This document shows positions 1 through 8,983 of a stretch of 9,115 bases of DNA, piece after piece (within the stretch, counting starts at the first letter, position 1; every line of letters begins with the position of its first letter). The stretch spans positions 1 to 9,115 of the forward strand of contig CDMY01000946.1 of assembly GCA_001179505.1 (NCBI GenBank), written 5' to 3'. The notes beneath the pieces are model-generated. The model made no database searches. It saw only the letters and a program-made list of their open reading frames with translations, and was not told the origin of the DNA. The position numbers and the translations under genes were made by a program. The DNA comes from Vitrella brassicaformis CCMP3155 (taxonomy: Eukaryota > Protista > Chromerida).

Positions 1-2321
1 GCGTGGACTTGGAGTGGGTGTATCTGATGAATGTCTGTGTGCGCACACCTGCGCATGCACGTTTGGACTTGGAGTGTGTGCATATGAGGAATGTCTCTGT
101 GCGCACACGCACGTGTCGACTTGGAGGGCTTGCGTAGGATGAATTTCTTTGTGCGCACACCTGCGCATGCACGTTTGGACCTGGAGTGTGTGCATATGAG
201 GAATGTCTCTGTAAGCAGGTGTGCGCACACGCACGTGTCGACTTGGATGGCTTGCATATGATGAATGTCTCGGTGCGCACACCTGCGCATGCACGTTCGG
301 ACTTGGAGTGTGTGTGTGTGTGTGTGTATATGCTGAATGTCTCGGTGCGCACACCTGCACATGTACGTTGGGACTTGGAGTGCGTGTATCTAATGAATGT
401 CTCTGTACGCAGATGTGCGCACACGCACGTGTCGACTTGGAGGGTTTGCATATGATGAATATCTGTATGCGCACACCTGCCCATGCACGTTTGGACTTGG
501 AGTGGGTGTATATGATGAATGTCTCTATGCGCACACCTGCGCATGCACGTTTGGACTAAGAGTGGGTGTATATGATGAATGTCTCTCTGCGCACACCTGT
601 GCATGCACGTTTGGACTAAGAGTGTCTTCATGCACGTTTGGACTAAGAGTGTGTGTATATGATGAATATCTCTGTGCGCATACCTGCGCATGCATGCGTC
701 GACTTGGAGTGGGTGTATATGATGAATGTGACTTGGAGTGTGTATATATGAGGAATGTCTCTATTCGCATACCTGCGCATGCACGCGTGGACTTGAAGTG
801 GGTGTATATAGGATGAGTGTCTGTATGCGCACACTGCGCATGCATGCGTCGACTTGGAGTGTGTGTATCTGATGAATGTCTCAGTGCGTACACCTGCGCA
901 TGCACGTTTGGACCTGGAGTGTGTGCATATGAAGAATGTCTCTGTGCGCACACGCACGTGTCGACTTGGAGGGCTTGCATAGGATGAATGTCTGTGTGCG
1001 CACACCTGTGCATGCACGTTTGGACCTGGAGTGTGTGCATATGAGGAATGTCTCCGTAAGCAGGTGTGCGCACACGCACGTGTCGACTTGGATGGCTTGC
1101 ATATGATGAATGTCTGTGTGCGCACACTGCGCATACACGTTTGGACTCGCACACCTGCGCATGCATGCGTGGACTTGGAGTGTGCGCATGCATGCGTGGA
1201 CTTGAAGTGTGTGTATATGATGAATTTCTCTGCGCAGATGCATGTGTGGGCTTTGAGTGTGTATATATGAAAAAATGTCTACGTGCGCACACTGCGCATG
1301 TACGTTTGGACTTGGAGTGTGTGTATGTGATGAATGTCTCAGTGCGTACACCTGCGCATGCACGTTTGGACTTGGAGTGGGTATATCTGATGAAGGTCTG
1401 TATGCGCACACCTGCGCATACACGTTTGGACTTGGAGTGGGTGTATATGATGAATGTCTCTTGGAGTGTGTGTATATGATGAACGTCTCTATTCGCATAC
1501 CTGCGCATGCACGCGTGGACTTGGAGTGGGTGTATCTGATGAATGTCTGTGTGCGCACACCTGCGCATGCACGTGTGGACTTGGAGTGGGTGTATATGAT
1601 GAATGTCTCAGTGCGTACACCTGCGCATGCACGTTTGGACTTGGAGTGCGTGTATCTGATGAATGTCTGTGTGCGCACACCTGCGCATGCACGTTTGGAC
1701 CGGGAGTGCGTGCATATGAGGAATGTCTCTGTGCGCACACGCACGTGTCGACTTGGAGGGCTTGCATATGACGAATGTCTGTGTGCGCACACCTGCGCAT
1801 GCACGTTCGGACTTGGAGTGTGTGTATAGGATGAATGTCCGTGTGCGCACACCTGCGCATGTACGTTTGGACTTGGAGTGTGTGTGTGTGTGTATATGAT
1901 GAATGTCTGTATGCGCACACCTGCACATGCACGTGTCGACTTGGAGTGGGTGTATCTGATGAATGTCTCTATGCGCACAGCTGCACATGCATGCACCCAG
2001 AGTGTGTGTATATGATGAATGTCTGTGTGCGCACACCTGCGCATGTACGTTTGGACTTGGAGTGTGTGTATATGATGAATATCTCTGTGCGCACACCTGC
2101 GCATGCATGCGTCGACTTGGAGTGTGTGTATATGATGAATGTGACTTGGAGTGTGTGTATATGATGAATGTTCGACGTGGAATGTGTGTATATGATGAAT
2201 GTCTGTATGCGCACACCTGCGCCTTTGGACTTCGAGTTTCTGTACATACTGAATGTCTGTGTGCGCACACCTGCGCATGCACATTTGGTCCTGGAGTGCG
2301 TGTATTTGATGAATGTTTCTG
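1..2321 (+). repeat. 60-bp tandem repeat (minisatellite/satellite) array, about 43 full or partial units, truncated by the left window edge
   Basis: Consensus GACTTGGAGTGTGTGTATATGATGAATGTCT(C/G)TGTGCGCACACCTGCGCATGCACGTTTG (60 nt). GAC(T/C)TGGAG-type anchors read at 6, 66, 118, 178, 240, 300, 372, 434, 494, 554, 614, 641, 701, 730, 790, 851, 911, 963, 1023, 1085 ... 1518, 1578, 1638, 1698, 1750, 1810, 1870, 1938, 2054, 2114, 2143, 2174, 2228, 2288. Spacing is mostly 60, with 52, 62, 72 and 27-31 nt variants. Units degrade toward 2321. Confidence 0.97.
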
Positions 2322-2972
2322 ATGCGAAGCGGACCCTTCGGATCGTGATTCTGCCCATCTGGGACGCAACGTGGAAGTATCGTGGCTGCTTCGAGGCACG
2401 CCTATCCGTCCGTCAGGTGCGCAGAGAGGCCACATGGATGAATGGATGGATGAATGTATGCATGACGCATATGTGTGCACACACGCCTGCCTGTCTATCT
2501 CGCCTATCTGTCCCTTCGCCACTGTGGGCTTCCCCGCAGCCCAGTGTCCGTGTCAGTCGCCCTTTATATGCAGTGCACAACCTGTGTCTATTCTGTGCCT
2601 GTGCCGTGCGCATGCGTAGAGAGAGATACATGCTTGTGTGACTGACTCGTGTGTATCCTCGCTATTCGCCTATGTTATGGTGCATTCACGGTGGATACAT
2701 GTGGGTATGACAAGGAGAAGTAGAGGAGAAGACGGAGATGCTCGTACACGCCAGTGTGTCTGTCTGCCGTGATGTGTTGTGTTTGCCATTGCTTGTCGCA
2801 GTAGTGTGTTCATGGAGCCACCGGCAGCCAGGCATACATGCAGTGCAAGTGAGGTCTATGTATGATGCATAGCCGATAGCCGACTGGTTGCTTCGTTTGT
2901 TGAGCTGCATGCATGATCGTCGATCACTGGCTGCTGGGGTTGACAAGCCCTTTAGCCGTACAGCTCGCTTAC

Positions 2973-3229
2973 CAGAAAGATCCGGCTTTGCCCAGCTTGA
3001 TTGCGTTGCGTATTCGCTTCATCGGCCTTCGGCAGCGTGTTTGCATCCTCGTGTTGCGTCGTTCGTGGACCTCGTGGACCCGTGTGCATCGTCGTGGTGT
3101 TCCGTGCGCGTGTGCATCGTCGTCTTCGTGTGCATCTTCGTCGTCGTGTTCATCTTTCAAGAGCTTATCTCCCACGTCACCCGTCGGAGCGAAGTCACCT
3201 TCCCCATCATCCCACTCGTGAGCCACACA
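2973..3229 (-). other. Possible exon with an acidic Asp/His-rich low-complexity segment
   Basis: Minus-strand ACGCAG acceptor (ending 3230) and GTAAGC donor (starting 2972) bracket one open frame CVAHEWDDGEGDFAPTGDVGDKLLKDEHDDEDAHEDDDAHAHG...AGSF. No family recognised. Confidence 0.25.
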
Positions 3230-3459
3230 CTGCGTGTCCGAGTGTGTGTCTCACTCGCGATCTAGAGCAGGCAGTGAGTCAGCTCTGTATTGAGACAGCC
3301 ACCCCCCGCCTCTCACTGTCTGTCTTTTGAACGGGCGGTGGCGCGAGCAGCCCCTCTCTTGTCCTCTTCCATTCGCCGCTACCCTACTTCGCCGTTGCTT
3401 ATACTCGACAGTCACAGATAAGCCACTCAGACAGGCCAGAGAGGAGCCGTTCGTATCAA

Positions 3460-3961
3460 TACGCACACGTGCGCACAGAGACATTCATCATATACGCACA
3501 CTCCTAGTCCAAACGTGCATGCGCAGGTGTGCGCACAGAGACATTTATCATCTACACACCCCGCAAGTCGACGCGTGCATGCGCAGGTGTGCGGACATAG
3601 ACATTCATCATATACGCACACTCCAAGTCGATGTGTGCATGCGACAGAGACATTCATCATATACGCACACTCCAAGTCGTCGCGTGCCTGCGCAGGTGTG
3701 CGCATACAGAAACATGCATCATATGCACGCACTCCAAATCACTGCGCACAGAAACATTCATCATATGCACACACTCCTAGTCCAAACGTGTATGCGCAGG
3801 TGTGCGCACAGAGACATTTATCATCTACACACACTGCAAGTCGACGCGTGCATGCACAGGTGTGCGCACATACACACACTCCACGTCGACACGTGCATGC
3901 CCAGGTGTACGCACAGAGACATTCATCATATACGCACATACTCCACGTCCAAACGTGCATG
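3460..3961 (-). repeat. Second array (~8 units) of the same 60-bp repeat in inverted orientation
   Basis: The plus strand reads CAAACGTGCATGCGCAGGTGTGCGCACAGAGACATTCATCATATACGCACACTCCAAGTC-like units, the reverse complement of the left-array consensus. The match ends at ...GTCCAAACGTGCATG (3961). The left edge is uncertain by about 10 nt. Confidence 0.95.
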
Positions 3962-4078
3962 TCGACATGTCCGCCATTTGCCCACCTCATGACCACGTAG
4001 ATGAAGTCTTGGTTTCGCCAGATTTCAAGCACGTCACAGAGGTTCCTATGGCTGCATCTTCAGCTTCTCGCACACACA
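3962..4078 (-). pseudogene. Protein kinase fragment (subdomains III/IV-V, CAMK-like hinge region), interrupted by the repeat array
   Basis: Minus strand 4050->3970 translates HRNLCDVLEIWRNQDFIYVVMRWANGG, resembling the eukaryotic kinase pattern H-P-N-I-V-x-L-x-E-V-F-E-x-x-x-x-I-Y-I-V-M-E-Y-A-x-G-G. The adjacent frame gives CVCEKLKMQP (4078-4049), which joins it if 2 nt were lost (CCACAT->CCAT); alternatively a CAG acceptor lies just upstream of the His codon. No HRD, DFG or APE motif was seen in the window. Recognised by eye only. Confidence 0.6.
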
Positions 4079-4745: not shown

Positions 4746-5203
4746 ATTGTGTTTAACGAGACTCGTGTCTGTAACCTCGAAGGGATCCTGTCGTCTCACG
4801 CACTAAACTAGCAGCATGTACATGCAAAGCATGCACACGGCCTGTCTACCCCTCCCTACACTGGCACCGGCGGACAAACAGATGGCAACAGAGAGCACTG
4901 CCTGCCTTGTAGAACGTTGACAAACACCGATTCCGGCTACATACACAAGAACGGGCGCTGTCGCCCAGCAAGAGCCATGGCAAGTGTACAGCTGTGCGTT
5001 CCAGGCGGCAGGCAATTCCGCCCAAGCTCGCAGCTAAGCTCGCAGCGCATCATGGGACTAGGCCGGTGGCCACTCCGCCCTTCCGTGAATCCGTGCAGCA
5101 ATCCCGAATCGAAGGCACTCTTCCCTAGCCTGGTTCATACACCCCTCTGCTTCTTCTGCCCTGCTTCCAGATCTCTTCTCTCCGTTCGTCTTTTCTTGAA
5201 AAG

Positions 5204-5346
5204 ATGGCCTCGGTAAGCAAAGCACGATGCAAGAGGAAGGTGAGCGCAGACGAGGAGATGGAAAAAGCGTGTGTGCGCTCTGATGCTTGCATTCCTTCAT
5301 GCAGAAGGAGGAGCCAACTCACAGCACTGCACTCCCCTTTCGGCTG
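5204..5346 (+). CDS. Possible 5' extension of NTPase-nuclease gene: micro-exon 5204-5212 (MAS), intron 5213-5304, exon continuing from 5305 (KEEPTHSTALPFRL)
   Basis: AAAGATGGCCTCG|GTAAGC is a strong phase-0 donor. TTCATGCAG|AAG at 5304/5305 is a phase-0 acceptor in the same frame as ATG 5347. It would add 17 aa (678 aa total). Confidence 0.4.
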
Positions 5347-5560
5347 ATGACGGCGGCAGTGCTATGGGTTCTCTCCTGTGTCCTTGTGCCTGGAGCGGCC
5401 AGCACCGCGAGGTCAGCAGCCTTTCTCCATCCCCGAGGGTATCACAAGGCGACGCTGGGCAAGTGGCAGAGGGCAACGTCGGCACGTCGGCGCTTGCCTG
5501 TGCGTCCTGTTCGCATTACGAGCCCAAAGGCGACGACGTCAAGCAAGAAGAGAGAAGAGG
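5347..5560 (+). CDS. Exon 1 of NTPase-nuclease gene: signal peptide + basic transit-peptide-like segment
   Basis: MTAAVLWVLSCVLVPGAASTARSAAFLHPRGYHKATLGKWQRATSARRRLPVRPVRITSPKATTSSKKREE, then donor G|GTGAGC at 5561. The frame is open upstream to 5287. Confidence 0.65.
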
Positions 5561-7608
5561 GTGAGCGAAAGGAGGTTGGGGCGGAGAGGGGCACAGCTGG
5601 CGGGTGCCACACGTACGTCTGCATGCATTGGAGCCCTGCGTGCGTGCGTGTGTGTGTGTGTGTGTGTGTGCAGCTGAGCGAAGGGAAATTACCATTGCAG
5701 ACTTATTACGCCTCCAGCAACTCAAAGATCGGAGACCCCCAGTGGAGGGTGTGCCATCTATTAATCTTGGTCCAAGGGACCCTCCTGTCTTCATCGGCCG
5801 TGACGCGCAGCTGAAGGACGCGATGCAGAAGGTCATGCAGTGGTACGAGGCACGGCCTGAGGACTATGGCGACTCTTTTCGGATCCCCCCGATGTCGCTC
5901 ACTCGATATGGTACGCGTTCAAGGCGAGATGTGGCGAACATGAAAGTGCACTGCTCCTCTATTGTGCGTGTGTGCTCGCATTGCAGTGCGTGGAGGAAAG
6001 ACGCGCATGCTGAAGGAGATCGGGCAAGAGCTGCTCGCCAAGGGGATCCCTGCCATCTACGTGACCTTCAACGACATCACCACCGCCAGTCGCTGGGAGA
6101 GAGACAACGAACCGCCACCTTTACAGCGGCTGCTTTCGCGGATCGGCTGGGCGGTGGCCACCGATGAGGCGAGGGGGCTTGTGGACAACAATTTCAACAC
6201 GTGGACGGCAACGATGGACGTGTCGGAAGACACAGTGGCGGACTGGTTGGGTCAGCACGGTTGCGTGCTCTTAATTGACGAGCTGAACAAGCTGATTACC
6301 AACGTCCAAGGAGGCAAGCCTGGGGAGGCCGTGGCTGGCTTTCTCAAGGACAGCTTCATCGACAGACGGAACCGCTACCTCATCTTTTCCAGTCATTCTA
6401 CCGCTACGGGCAACAAGCTGGCCGTGTTCATTCAAAGCCCAAGTGATCGTCACGTCGTTCGGCCTAGCCTGCCAGTGATCACGACGCCAGACGAGGCCAC
6501 ATGCATCAACCAGGCTGCTAGGAAGGGAGCGGTCTGCTATCTTGGGCTGACACCCGCTCTGGTGCATGAAGCCTACAACGAGATGGGCGGCAGTGTTCAT
6601 GATTGCGCCAAGGATACCTTCAGCCGACTCGCGGCACCACCTCTCGATACAGCAACGGTGGAATGCGTCATTATGATGTCCCTCGAGGGGGACATGCGGT
6701 GGGTGGAGGGCCTTGCCGAGTGGTCACAGGCGCTGGATGCGTTTGTTGGTGGTCCAGTCGGCACGGACATCTCACACACCTGGCCCCCATGCTTCCTCGC
6801 GGCCGCCTGTGATCGCCTGTCTCGCGCTACCCGCACGGACATCACACTCGGTGTTCGTCAGGGAACGGGACTCATTCGCGATGGCCTCCGACAGCTGGCT
6901 GAGGCGGATGACCGCTCCGGCAAGCAGTGGGAGGGTGCTTGTCAGGCAGCCATCATCCAACGGATGCTGCAGAGCGACTTGATGGGTGTCCCGCGGCCTG
7001 GTCCGACCCTTTCTGACAAAGCCAGACAGCTGCTGCCCCCTTGCATTCTTGATGGTGCGTAAAACAGATGCACACACGGGCACAAGAGGTCCTCCCGGCT
7101 GTTGGCCAAACTTGTTGCCTCTCTGCGTGTGGGTCTGTCAGGACTGTGTTCATTCGGAGGCACTTTTGAGCCCACTGGTTTCGGAAGGCCTCTCATTCGG
7201 CCGGATCGCACCGCGGACATCCCGTATCTTCGCGAGCTGGTTGAACGGGAGGCGGCACGCAAGGGGCTTCATCAAGGCCAAACATCTCTCTTCGTGAGGC
7301 CCGCCGTGAGCGACTTCCCCGCGTATGATTTCTTTATCTTCATCTTGAACAACGGCCGGGTGGAGGAGATTTGGGGCTACCAGTGCAAGACAGGCAAGGA
7401 GAAACCCTCAGATGAGCAGACGCGCGCCCTGACCGATGAAGTGGATGTGTCAGTGTGGCTGAAGGGGGAGGCGGGATCGAGGCAGACTCGGTCGCAGTAT
7501 GGGTACATCATCGCGTCTCGAGCAGCCATTGAAGACTTGTTTGGCTTCAGTCTCAGGCGCACATGCCCCCTCCGCTGGCTGCTAGACCCGAGGGTGTGGG
7601 TTGACTAG
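5347..7608 (+). CDS. Crinkler/RHS-like P-loop NTPase (STAND/AAA+-like) + PD-(D/E)xK nuclease fusion with N-terminal signal/transit-like leader; join(5347..5560,5674..5910,5987..7054,7142..7608), 661 aa
   Basis: Three GT-AG introns (5561-5673 GTGAGC..TGCAG, 5911-5986 GTACGC..TTGCAG, 7055-7141 GTGCGT..GTCAG), all phase 1, splice four separate ORFs into one uninterrupted frame (1986 nt including TAG). Motifs: FIGR (5790-5801), Walker A-like RYVRGGKT (split by intron 2), IYVTF strand, Walker B VLLIDE (6265-6282), sensor-like YLIFSSH, LGLTPAL, nuclease GKQWE (6919-6933), P-x4-FPAYD (7300-7329), QCK (7381-7389). The true start may be upstream (ATG 5204 micro-exon). Confidence 0.85.
5648..5670 (+). 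repeat. (GT)n microsatellite immediately upstream of the intron 1 acceptor
   Basis: 23-nt perfect GT alternation directly followed by CAG at 5671-5673. Confidence 0.95.
5674..5910 (+). CDS. Exon 2 of NTPase-nuclease gene (pre-Walker A region with FIGR motif)
   Basis: Acceptor TGTGCAG ends at 5673 and donor G|GTACGC starts at 5911. Translation AERREITIADLL...PPVFIGRDAQLKDAM...MSLTRY. Confidence 0.85.
5987..7054 (+). CDS. Exon 3 of NTPase-nuclease gene (NTPase core, helical region, start of nuclease)
   Basis: 1068-nt open exon inside ORF 5962..7062, with acceptor TTGCAG (5986) and donor G|GTGCGT (7055). Contains GGKT, VLLIDE and GKQWE. Confidence 0.92.
7142..7608 (+). CDS. Exon 4 of NTPase-nuclease gene (PD-(D/E)xK-like nuclease core)
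   Basis: Acceptor GTCTGTCAG (7141). Translation GLCSFGG...VRPAVSDFPAYDFFIF...IWGYQCKTG...LDPRVWVD, stop TAG 7606-7608. A further donor at 7594 (GTGTGG) cannot be excluded. Confidence 0.88.
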
Positions 7609-8610
7609 CGGTGTCTGTCGGCGTGTATGTGTTTGTGTGCGTGCGTGTGTGGTGGGTCTGTGCGGCTGTTGGTGCACATTACGTGGGCAAATCGATGGGA
7701 TTTCTTTGGCTCGCGGGCACGCTTCATGTGTCAAGTGATGGAAATGGACTTGCATTTACCATGTTGCGAGGGCGGAAGCTGCCTTTCTCCGTCAGCCTCA
7801 GCAGTAGGTAATCGTACCAGAGGTCCATCCGACACACACGCCACCCCACTCTATTTCACCAGGCGCGCTAAGCTAAGAGGGAAAAAGCCAAAAACGTATG
7901 GATACATCGATAGAGAGACGCCATATTCTTGCTTTCTTTCAGTCCGTCAAGCACATACGTATATACACGTCACGGCAAGAATGACTGGTTCGGGTTTCTT
8001 ACCCTACGTACACATCTCAGGCCCACACACAGACACACACGCCGACAAGACACATGCAACAGCCACGCATCAACCGCCGAATCAGCCAGCCAACAGCCAA
8101 CCGACGCAACCAGGAAACGCACATGTGTGTGTCTCACCATCTCTGCACGCACACGCGTGAATCGGTGCATGAAGGAGGGCTGAATGTCTGCATTGTAATG
8201 TATTGCGGCGCAGCTATGTACGTCGGGACAGGCACATTGCACACACGGACATACACACTCACATTCTCACGCATGGCCGTCCTTCGTGTGCGCTGTACTG
8301 GTATGCTGCAGAGACGAAGTTGTGGATCAGGACCAGCCCAAGTTGAGCGTGCTCCACCTCGACGCGCCAAACTATAGCAGCATGAGACTGGGACGTGACG
8401 TAAAGATACATATGCACACATAGCGAATGGATGCATATCATACGTCCGTTTGTTTGTTTGGGCATCCATTCATTCAGACCTCATGCAGGGGCGGGCGAGC
8501 GGGCGTCCTCTGGGTTGGTCGTAACCAGGGACAGGCATGTCTGTCTAGGTATCTACTTGCACAGACAGATGTATGTATGTGTGTGGACGGCACACGCACA
8601 CAGGTCATGC

Positions 8611-8728: not shown

Positions 8729-8983
8729 ATGAGGGAGCGTGTGTCGGACTACACCCAGCCCCCTCCAGCGACCCTCATCCCGCGAGACGGCGGCGGGCTC
8801 CCCTGTTGCGCATGCAACGCGAAAGGGAAGCCTGCGCTGTCCACATGCAGCCGAGGATGTGACTGCCGGGAGAACAAGCGCCTCTGCACTGACTGTGTCA
8901 ACTGCAAGCGCGGCACGAGCACGAATTTTGTGTATCCCGCGGCCCCAACCGTTTGCGATGATGATGTGCGAAAAGGCCGGTGA
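8729..8983 (+). CDS. Small protein or first exon with CXC-like (MSL2/tesmin-type) Cys-rich zinc cluster
   Basis: 84-aa ORF after a pyrimidine-rich leader. CCACNAKGKPALSTCSRGCDCRENKRLCTDCVNC has 9 Cys in 34 aa, spaced CC-x-C-x10-C-x3-C-x-C-x6-C-x2-C-x2-C, with an Asn 7 residues later. A possible donor G|GTGAGG at 8980 overlaps the stop, so the gene may continue. Confidence 0.55.
   Translation: MRERVSDYTQPPPATLIPRDGGGLPCCACNAKGKPALSTCSRGCDCRENKRLCTDCVNCKRGTSTNFVYPAAPTVCDDDVRKGR

Follow-up and report, generated by a model that had tools for sequence, protein, structure and literature searches.

The window analyzed here is a stretch of 9,115 nucleotides from the chromerid Vitrella brassicaformis CCMP3155, a photosynthetic alga related to the malaria parasites (GenBank assembly GCA_001179505.1, contig CDMY01000946.1), and its DNA is eukaryotic nuclear. 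It holds an expressed five-exon nuclear gene for a protein of 678 residues (bases 144-2177 of transcript contig L001), referred to below as the window gene and the window protein. The protein begins with a leader that, judged by its sequence, has the anatomy of the bipartite plastid signals of the red lineage, followed by a nucleoside triphosphatase (NTPase) body and a restriction endonuclease (REase)-like C-terminal domain. The proposal as a whole, which we hold with moderate confidence, is that the leader would deliver a nucleoside triphosphate (NTP)-gated nuclease to the plastid stroma, and that exon exchange would have set it apart from sister proteins with nuclear-type starts.

Translation of positions 5347-5562 yielded the peptide quoted in the initial annotation, with the hydrophobic core, the SAA-F junction and the RRL within SARRRLP all in place. 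Residues are numbered here from an upstream start codon, discussed below, so that the Met of the initial annotation becomes residue 18 and its Phe26 becomes Phe43; two Glu are then found at residues 5-6. In the putative signal peptide, Arg16 closes the n-region, the hydrophobic core spans residues 20-31, and Ser and Ala occupy positions -3 and -1 relative to Phe43. The mean Kyte-Doolittle hydropathy of the core was 2.72 (12 residues, from residue 20), compared with at most 1.63 in leaderless paralogs. A mitochondrial presequence was considered as well and was dropped, the core being strongly hydrophobic.

Downstream of the core, residues 43-88 (46 residues) comprise 13 Lys/Arg, 9 Ser/Thr and 2 Glu, the latter being the final two residues, which gives a net charge of +11. 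The initial annotation had described a stretch with 13 Lys/Arg and a complete lack of Asp/Glu in the first 69 residues, and both statements were borne out: the 44 residues following Phe26 in that numbering contain 13 Lys/Arg, 9 Ser/Thr and no Asp/Glu, and the first acidic residue is number 70. The longest acid-free run in the full open reading frame (ORF) is 80 residues, the next longest being 27. If Asp/Glu were as frequent as in the protein body (12.9%), an acid-free run of 69 residues would be expected with a probability of about 7e-5.

Chromerid plastid proteins are imported by means of a signal peptide and a transit peptide behind it, and the first residue past the cleavage site is usually Phe (PMC6668581); ASAFind scores the 20 residues that follow this site (PMC4329603). 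The Vitrella-specific ASAFind matrix was taken from the supplement of PMC6668581, whose authors set a threshold of 1, and was summed by hand over positions +1 to +20, starting at the conserved Phe. The resulting scores were 2.07 for the window gene and 2.13, 2.05, 2.29 and 2.31 for the paralogs P0002, P0170, P0029 and P0034, respectively. Of the 77 entries in the reference table of PMC6668581 that score at least 2.0, 76 are plastid proteins, and among the 23 non-plastid entries scoring above zero a single one attains 2.0, a comparison to be read with the matrix having been trained on these same references, few secretory controls among them.

Given the assumed cleavage site, Phe stands at +1 directly after Ser-Ala-Ala, and both the composition of the following stretch and its score are those of a transit peptide. 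The plastid-type bipartite anatomy claimed in the initial annotation is present, and plastid targeting of the window protein is likely by prediction. The leader shares with bipartite signals of the ASAFAP type (PMC4329603, PMC6668581) the putative signal peptide, the small residues at -3 and -1, the Phe at +1 and the basic, hydroxylated, acid-poor stretch; it differs from them in its long n- and c-regions. The cargo differs too: such signals are carried by metabolic and housekeeping plastid proteins, whereas the window leader precedes a candidate nuclease of what appears to be effector or transposon ancestry.

The leader is not confined to the window gene. Five Vitrella copies, namely the window gene, P0002, P0170/P0028, P0029/P0174 and P0034, share a leader alignable over its whole length, in the order LP..R[W/L], hydrophobic core, small residues, F-[L/M/I]-H, and an Arg-rich stretch containing RR[L/A]. 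Phe and the His at +3 are conserved in all five, RRL is found in four with RRA in the fifth, and the acid-poor stretch rich in Arg, Ser and Thr measures 28-49 residues. For P0002 (L005), the hydrophobic core appears only if translation begins at an in-frame ATG nine codons ahead of the annotated start, and the deposited start is probably too far downstream. With homologous leaders in five paralogs distributed over two clades, the alignment indicates that the leader is old and shared, and that this gene did not gain it on its own. Both F-x-H and RR[L/A] are kept among the paralogs beyond what a generic transit peptide needs, and they may be processing sites or may simply reflect common descent.

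The RRL motif also bears on a different destination, which the initial annotation had raised as an alternative. As a secretory or endomembrane protein, the window protein would carry an ordinary signal peptide and a basic pro-region cut at RRL by an ASP5/plasmepsin-V-like Golgi protease, in TEXEL-like fashion, and would leave the cell or end up in a secretory organelle, which would suit the effector role of Crinkler proteins. Toxoplasma TEXEL (RRLxx) and Plasmodium PEXEL sequences resemble the window leader in placing Arg-Arg-Leu within about 35 residues after a putative signal peptide, and RRL follows the hydrophobic core in all leader paralogs but the one with RRA. Relatives elsewhere in eukaryotes bear a Crinkler header, which is linked with delivery into other cells, and pepsin-family aspartyl proteases of Vitrella and Chromera appear in apicomplexan phylogenies (PMC8540915, as members of a tree only).

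Unlike TEXEL and PEXEL, the window leader combines a conserved Phe at the predicted cleavage site with a transit-peptide-like composition, and its host is a free-living phototroph. Ordinary secretion needs no Phe right after the small residues, yet this residue is kept in all five leaders; the composition and the scores of 2.05-2.31 are typical of plastid references, scores of 2.0 or more being almost absent from the non-plastid references that score above zero; and RRL is no rare string within an Arg-rich stretch. We know of no host-export biology in free-living Vitrella. Secretion is accordingly regarded as an unlikely destination.

Even less probable, in our estimate, is an uncleaved signal anchor, which would tether the protein in the endoplasmic reticulum (ER) or in the outermost plastid membrane with the NTPase and nuclease facing the cytosol. 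The core does begin as late as residue 20, behind a 17-residue n-region without net positive charge beyond the N-terminal amine, and its C-terminal flank is strongly positive, which under the established positive-inside rule favors a cytosolic C-terminus. However, the core is short, at about 12 residues, and Pro-Gly and small residues come after it, as in cleaved signals; a positive flank after the signal peptide is found in all bipartite plastid leaders; and the conserved Phe would be left without a role. Import into the plastid behind a cleaved signal peptide is the reading followed below.

The structure of the gene was established with transcript contig L001, a JGI (Joint Genome Institute) assembly of 2389 nt from sample 3300017148. 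It maps to the window with 100% identity in five blocks (5061-5212, 5305-5560, 5674-5910, 5987-7054 and 7142-7817), and therefore the gene is expressed and the three introns of the initial annotation are real. The splice from the annotated exon to position 5674 is used in L001, with the GT donor at 5561 and the acceptor just before 5674. The leader does lie on an exon of its own, as had been claimed, and this exon ends 5 residues before the conserved body. The intron at which the leader ends had been called intron 1; the intron stands, whereas its number does not, since L001 shows a fourth intron upstream (5213-5304) and makes it intron 2. Coordinates of all features are collected in Table 1. 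Within intron 2, a (GT)n microsatellite occupies positions 5646-5670, just before the acceptor. Sequence searches with the window were made exon by exon, the full-length protein being taken from L001 only.

The start codon also differs from that proposed initially. In L001, an in-frame stop precedes an in-frame ATG at 5205, which has a strong context (aaagATGg, with A at -3 and G at +4), while the ATG of the initial annotation at 5347 has C at -3 and A at +4. The segment between the two candidates is kept in the paralogs as the LP..R[W/L] motif, located just before the hydrophobic core, and because of this conservation the upstream start is favored. The protein most likely starts 17 residues earlier than annotated, at ATG 5205 (MASKEE...). 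A start on a mini-exon is also seen in P0034 (L004, 3001-3101), where, as in the window gene, an intron follows directly after the first one to three codons.

It might also be asked whether the leader is translated or used at all; translation could start elsewhere and leave a cytosolic or nuclear protein, like the leaderless sisters. The JGI gene call on the transcript (P0001) is a partial ORF that begins at an internal GTG in exon 3 and is the sole protein of the collection with an identical sequence, and gene models of the family are often wrong at their ends. Yet the GTG call is a prokaryote-style choice of start, no in-frame ATG lies between the leader and the conserved block, and the first Met of exon 3 follows F-I-G-R. 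The leader ORF is open, is spliced in frame and is conserved at the protein level in five paralogs, and an unused leader is thus judged very improbable. The searches made here did not retrieve the window gene from the NCBI Vitrella proteins, and the reference annotation may lack it or model it wrongly. The proteins nearest to it are all named Vitrella brassicaformis CCMP3155.

Table 1. Features of the window gene, with residues numbered from the ATG at 5205
Feature	Position in window	Strand	Evidence
Exon 1 (5' untranslated region to contig end and first three codons, Met-Ala-Ser; ATG 5205-5207)	5061..5212	+	L001 bases 1-152, 100%
Intron 1 (GT..AG, phase 0; missed in the initial annotation)	5213..5304	+	gap between L001 blocks
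Exon 2, leader exon (residues 4-88 and first base of codon 89; includes 5347-5560)	5305..5560	+	L001
Hydrophobic core of putative signal peptide (residues 20-31)	5353..5388	+	mean Kyte-Doolittle
Phe43 (formerly Phe26), putative +1 after Ser-Ala-Ala cleavage	5422..5424	+	Phe in all five leader paralogs
Transit-peptide-like stretch (residues 43-88)	5422..5559	+	composition; hand-summed matrix score
Arg-Arg-Leu, residues 65-67, TEXEL-like	5488..5496	+	present in 4/5 leader paralogs
Intron 2 (phase 1), joins variable N-terminal module to conserved body	5561..5673	+	L001; equivalent in six paralog loci
Exon 3: I-T-I-A-D-L-L block, F-I-G-R motif, strand into P-loop	5674..5910	+	L001; aligns with all paralogs
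Intron 3 (phase 1), divides P-loop region	5911..5986	+	L001; P0001 across junction ...R-Y-V-R-G-G-K-T...
Exon 4: NTPase core, helical region, possible winged helix	5987..7054	+	L001; model; fold matches
Intron 4 (phase 1)	7055..7141	+	L001; P0001 across junction ...I-L-D-G-L-C-S...
Exon 5, coding part: REase-like C-terminal domain; stop codon 7606-7608	7142..7608	+	conservation; model
3' untranslated region to contig end	7609..7817	+	L001 bases 1713-2389 = window 7141-7817

At least 18 distinct paralogous copies were found in Vitrella, and the 12 of them included in a neighbor-joining tree formed one clade with 98% bootstrap. Other copies have a short Lys/Arg-rich first exon with strings such as K-R-L-K-R, K-K-R-K-L-D or K-R-P-Q-E, which look like nuclear localization signals. 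A phase-1 intron located 4-16 residues ahead of the conserved block was present in all seven mapped genes (the window gene and six paralog loci). Leader-type and Lys/Arg-type N-termini occur side by side in one clade with 100% bootstrap, and another clade (92% bootstrap) has the leader type only. The exchange of N-termini among paralogs at this intron, which the initial annotation had suggested, is supported because the intron is shared by all mapped genes and because the mixed clade has full bootstrap support.

P0033, P0168 and P0169 lie on a single Vitrella contig of 109,775 bp, which suggests a tandem cluster. P0168 has an N-terminal extension of another kind, long and rich in Arg, which might serve as a further type of targeting signal.

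The partial protein P0076 (L008:141-1064, Logan SRR24390598) starts with a hydrophobic core, followed by V-T-S directly before Phe and by a basic stretch. Its sequence hints that the arrangement extends beyond Vitrella, and it is possibly a second, independent plastid-type leader on the same body.

An exhaustive HMMER search returned 312 representative proteins with E values of at most 0.001. Members that bear names are from Chromera, diatoms and an aphelid, and a profile search of a set of 5.8 billion proteins added three further proteins without names and no named relatives among the 8000 candidates covered. P0001 was modeled with AlphaFold on the basis of 96 relatives, and the model reached a predicted local distance difference test score (pLDDT) of 91.3 and a predicted template-modeling score of 0.92. 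Searched against the PDB with Foldseek, it matched AAA+/STAND NTPases with E values from 1.6e-5 to about 7e-4, including the archaeal ATPase 2qen, CED-4, Apaf-1, plant NLRs, ORC/Cdc6, Tn7 TnsC and the AVAST5 defense filament.

The Walker A motif G-G-K-T (5992-6003) and the Walker B D-E (6277-6282) are intact and nearly invariant in the family. The modeled body is that of an AAA+/STAND-like P-loop NTPase. It also contains a helical region (residues 224-411 of the model) with a beta-hairpin at 307-321, and the fold alignments to CED-4, ORC and 2qen span about 390-450 columns, past the NTPase core; the helical region may include a winged helix.

Members of the STAND/AAA+ group (2qen/2fna, CED-4/Apaf-1, NLRs, ORC/Cdc6, TnsC and AVAST5) are the best fold matches of the window protein, with about 310-450 aligned columns, and, like them, it would follow the logic of a nucleotide switch coupled to an effector domain. 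Sequence identity to them is only 9-14%. Typical STAND NTPases have a C-terminal repeat sensor (TPR, WD or LRR) after the core. In contrast, the window protein has no repeats at this place and ends in a 155-residue REase-like domain, its effector being C-terminal.

The C-terminal domain, encoded by the last exon, was modeled with a pLDDT of 85.1 and an alpha-beta-beta-beta-alpha-beta topology. An Asp (7327-7329) stands just ahead of strand 2, and a Gln (7381-7383) and a Lys (7387-7389) end strand 3 as Q-x-K; each of the three residues of this D...QxK motif is conserved in at least 90% of sequences. Because the topology and the placement of the motif fit the PD-(D/E)xK layout, the domain is a probable nuclease of this type in the model.

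The REase-like domain is encoded at all paralog loci examined, although several deposited gene models stop short of it. The models P0034, P0002 and P0003 at loci L004, L005 and L006 end before the domain, which is encoded just downstream; at L004 it is called as a separate gene of 199 residues, and at L005 it is spread over two frames, possibly owing to a short intron or one frame change.

Among Crinkler C-termini, the combination of an NTPase, a helix-turn-helix and an REase is the most frequent one (Zhang et al. 2016), according to the review PMC5289972, and among the headers of Crinkler-RHS-type (CR) proteins covered there, only one has a hydrophobic region (Angomonas) and none an organelle signal. 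The relationship of the window family to these proteins was examined with the Crinkler header family PF20147 (Pfam cut-off 24.6 bits) on 38 distant relatives with long N-termini. P0063, from the diatom Nitzschia, scored 29.6 bits, above the cut-off, and P0059 and P0082 fell just under it with 23.7 and 21.4 bits, respectively. Other long N-termini in this set carry SAP, WW or BRCT domains. In the Pfam search, neither the PF20147 header nor its LxLFLAK motif was found in any exon of the window gene, the N-terminus being the hydrophobic leader instead. By sequence comparison, the gene thus has Crinkler-headed proteins in its family but itself lacks the defining header.

Several features are common to the window gene and the Crinkler/CR proteins: a body of P-loop NTPase, helical region and REase-like domain behind a variable N-terminal module, lineage-specific expansion, as in the many Vitrella copies, and occurrence in free-living eukaryotes. 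The window gene differs from them in having a putative signal peptide and a transit-peptide-like stretch in place of the ubiquitin-like header, and its presumed destination is the cell's own plastid, not another organism. The label of a Crinkler-type NTPase-nuclease given in the initial annotation holds for the NTPase, by its fold, and for the family link, through P0063; it does not hold for the header, and the nuclease fold is suggestive. No oomycete CRN appeared by name among the family matches listed, and no paper with an organelle signal in front of a Crinkler-type module turned up in the literature search. The surroundings of the window gene showed no terminal repeats, inverted or direct, and there is therefore no sign that this copy is a mobile element.

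Taken in sequence, the proposed steps would be as follows. The window protein would enter the ER co-translationally, and cleavage of the signal peptide would expose Phe43. The basic transit peptide would then carry the protein across the inner plastid membranes and be removed. In the stroma, the NTPase would gate the nuclease, which would act on plastid nucleic acid, while the sisters of the Lys/Arg type presumably have this same task in the nucleus. The family would have been split between the two compartments by exchange of the first coding exon or exons at the conserved phase-1 intron.

A number of observations count against this proposal. With the upstream start, the n-region of the putative signal peptide is long (17 residues) and holds two Glu, and the c-region is also long (11 residues) and contains an Arg. 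The use of Phe is less strict in Vitrella than in Chromera (PMC6668581), and the matrix scores have the overlap of training and reference entries described above. Cleavage before Phe43 is assumed; an alternative cleavage after Gly-Ala-Ala, by which no Phe would be exposed, scored 4.57, compared with 5.47 at the Phe site (25 positions, same matrix). With respect to the body, no significant family match was obtained in Pfam for any exon of the window gene, sequence searches of the PDB with single exons and with a 96-sequence profile gave no match, and neither did PADLOC or NCBIfam. No named relative among the matches listed is called Crinkler, and most of these matches are nameless. A Foldseek search with the C-terminal domain alone returned nothing below E = 1e-3, and its best PD-(D/E)xK matches (Hjc, MspJI, PaqCI, SPARDA and DdmD) were weak, with E values of 0.07-0.6, and stood among unrelated matches. 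Finally, no localization or activity data were found for any member of the family.

A broader scenario can be offered only tentatively, and we consider it possible rather than probable. In it, a Crinkler-type NTPase-nuclease of transposon or toxin origin would have been domesticated in a chromerid, with nuclear and plastid sets formed by exchange of first exons, and with the plastid set serving as an NTP-gated endonuclease system on plastid DNA. Its tasks might include control of copy number, removal of damaged or foreign DNA, or elimination of the plastid genome at a certain stage of the life cycle, and P0076 would be a maybe independent instance.

Outside the gene, positions 4-2326 are taken up by a satellite whose unit measures about 60 bp (about 38 copies), and inverted copies of the 60-bp unit are found at 3469-3938. 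The long ORFs at 186-4000 were rejected as neighboring genes; all of them lie inside the 60-bp satellite arrays and are repeat artefacts. Downstream of the gene, an 84-codon Cys-rich ORF on the forward strand (8729-8983) possibly belongs to the next gene as one of its exons. A GT/CA-rich inverted repeat of 24 nt (7616-7639 and 8024-8047), with arms that are 88% complementary and 384 nt apart, lies at the 3' untranslated region and beyond it.

The present analysis corrects the model of the window gene and indicates that several paralog models are too short. NTPase-nuclease modules of the Crinkler type are known to serve as weapons or as selfish elements, with the N-terminal header deciding the site of delivery. 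The header of the window gene appears to be an organelle import signal, and at the same intron its sisters have a start of the nuclear type. If the plastid location is true, the family would be a clear natural case of an enzyme retargeted between genome-bearing compartments by exon exchange. It would also provide a candidate nuclease for the poorly known maintenance of DNA in apicomplexan-related plastids, and a further case of an internal role for Crinkler relatives in free-living eukaryotes.

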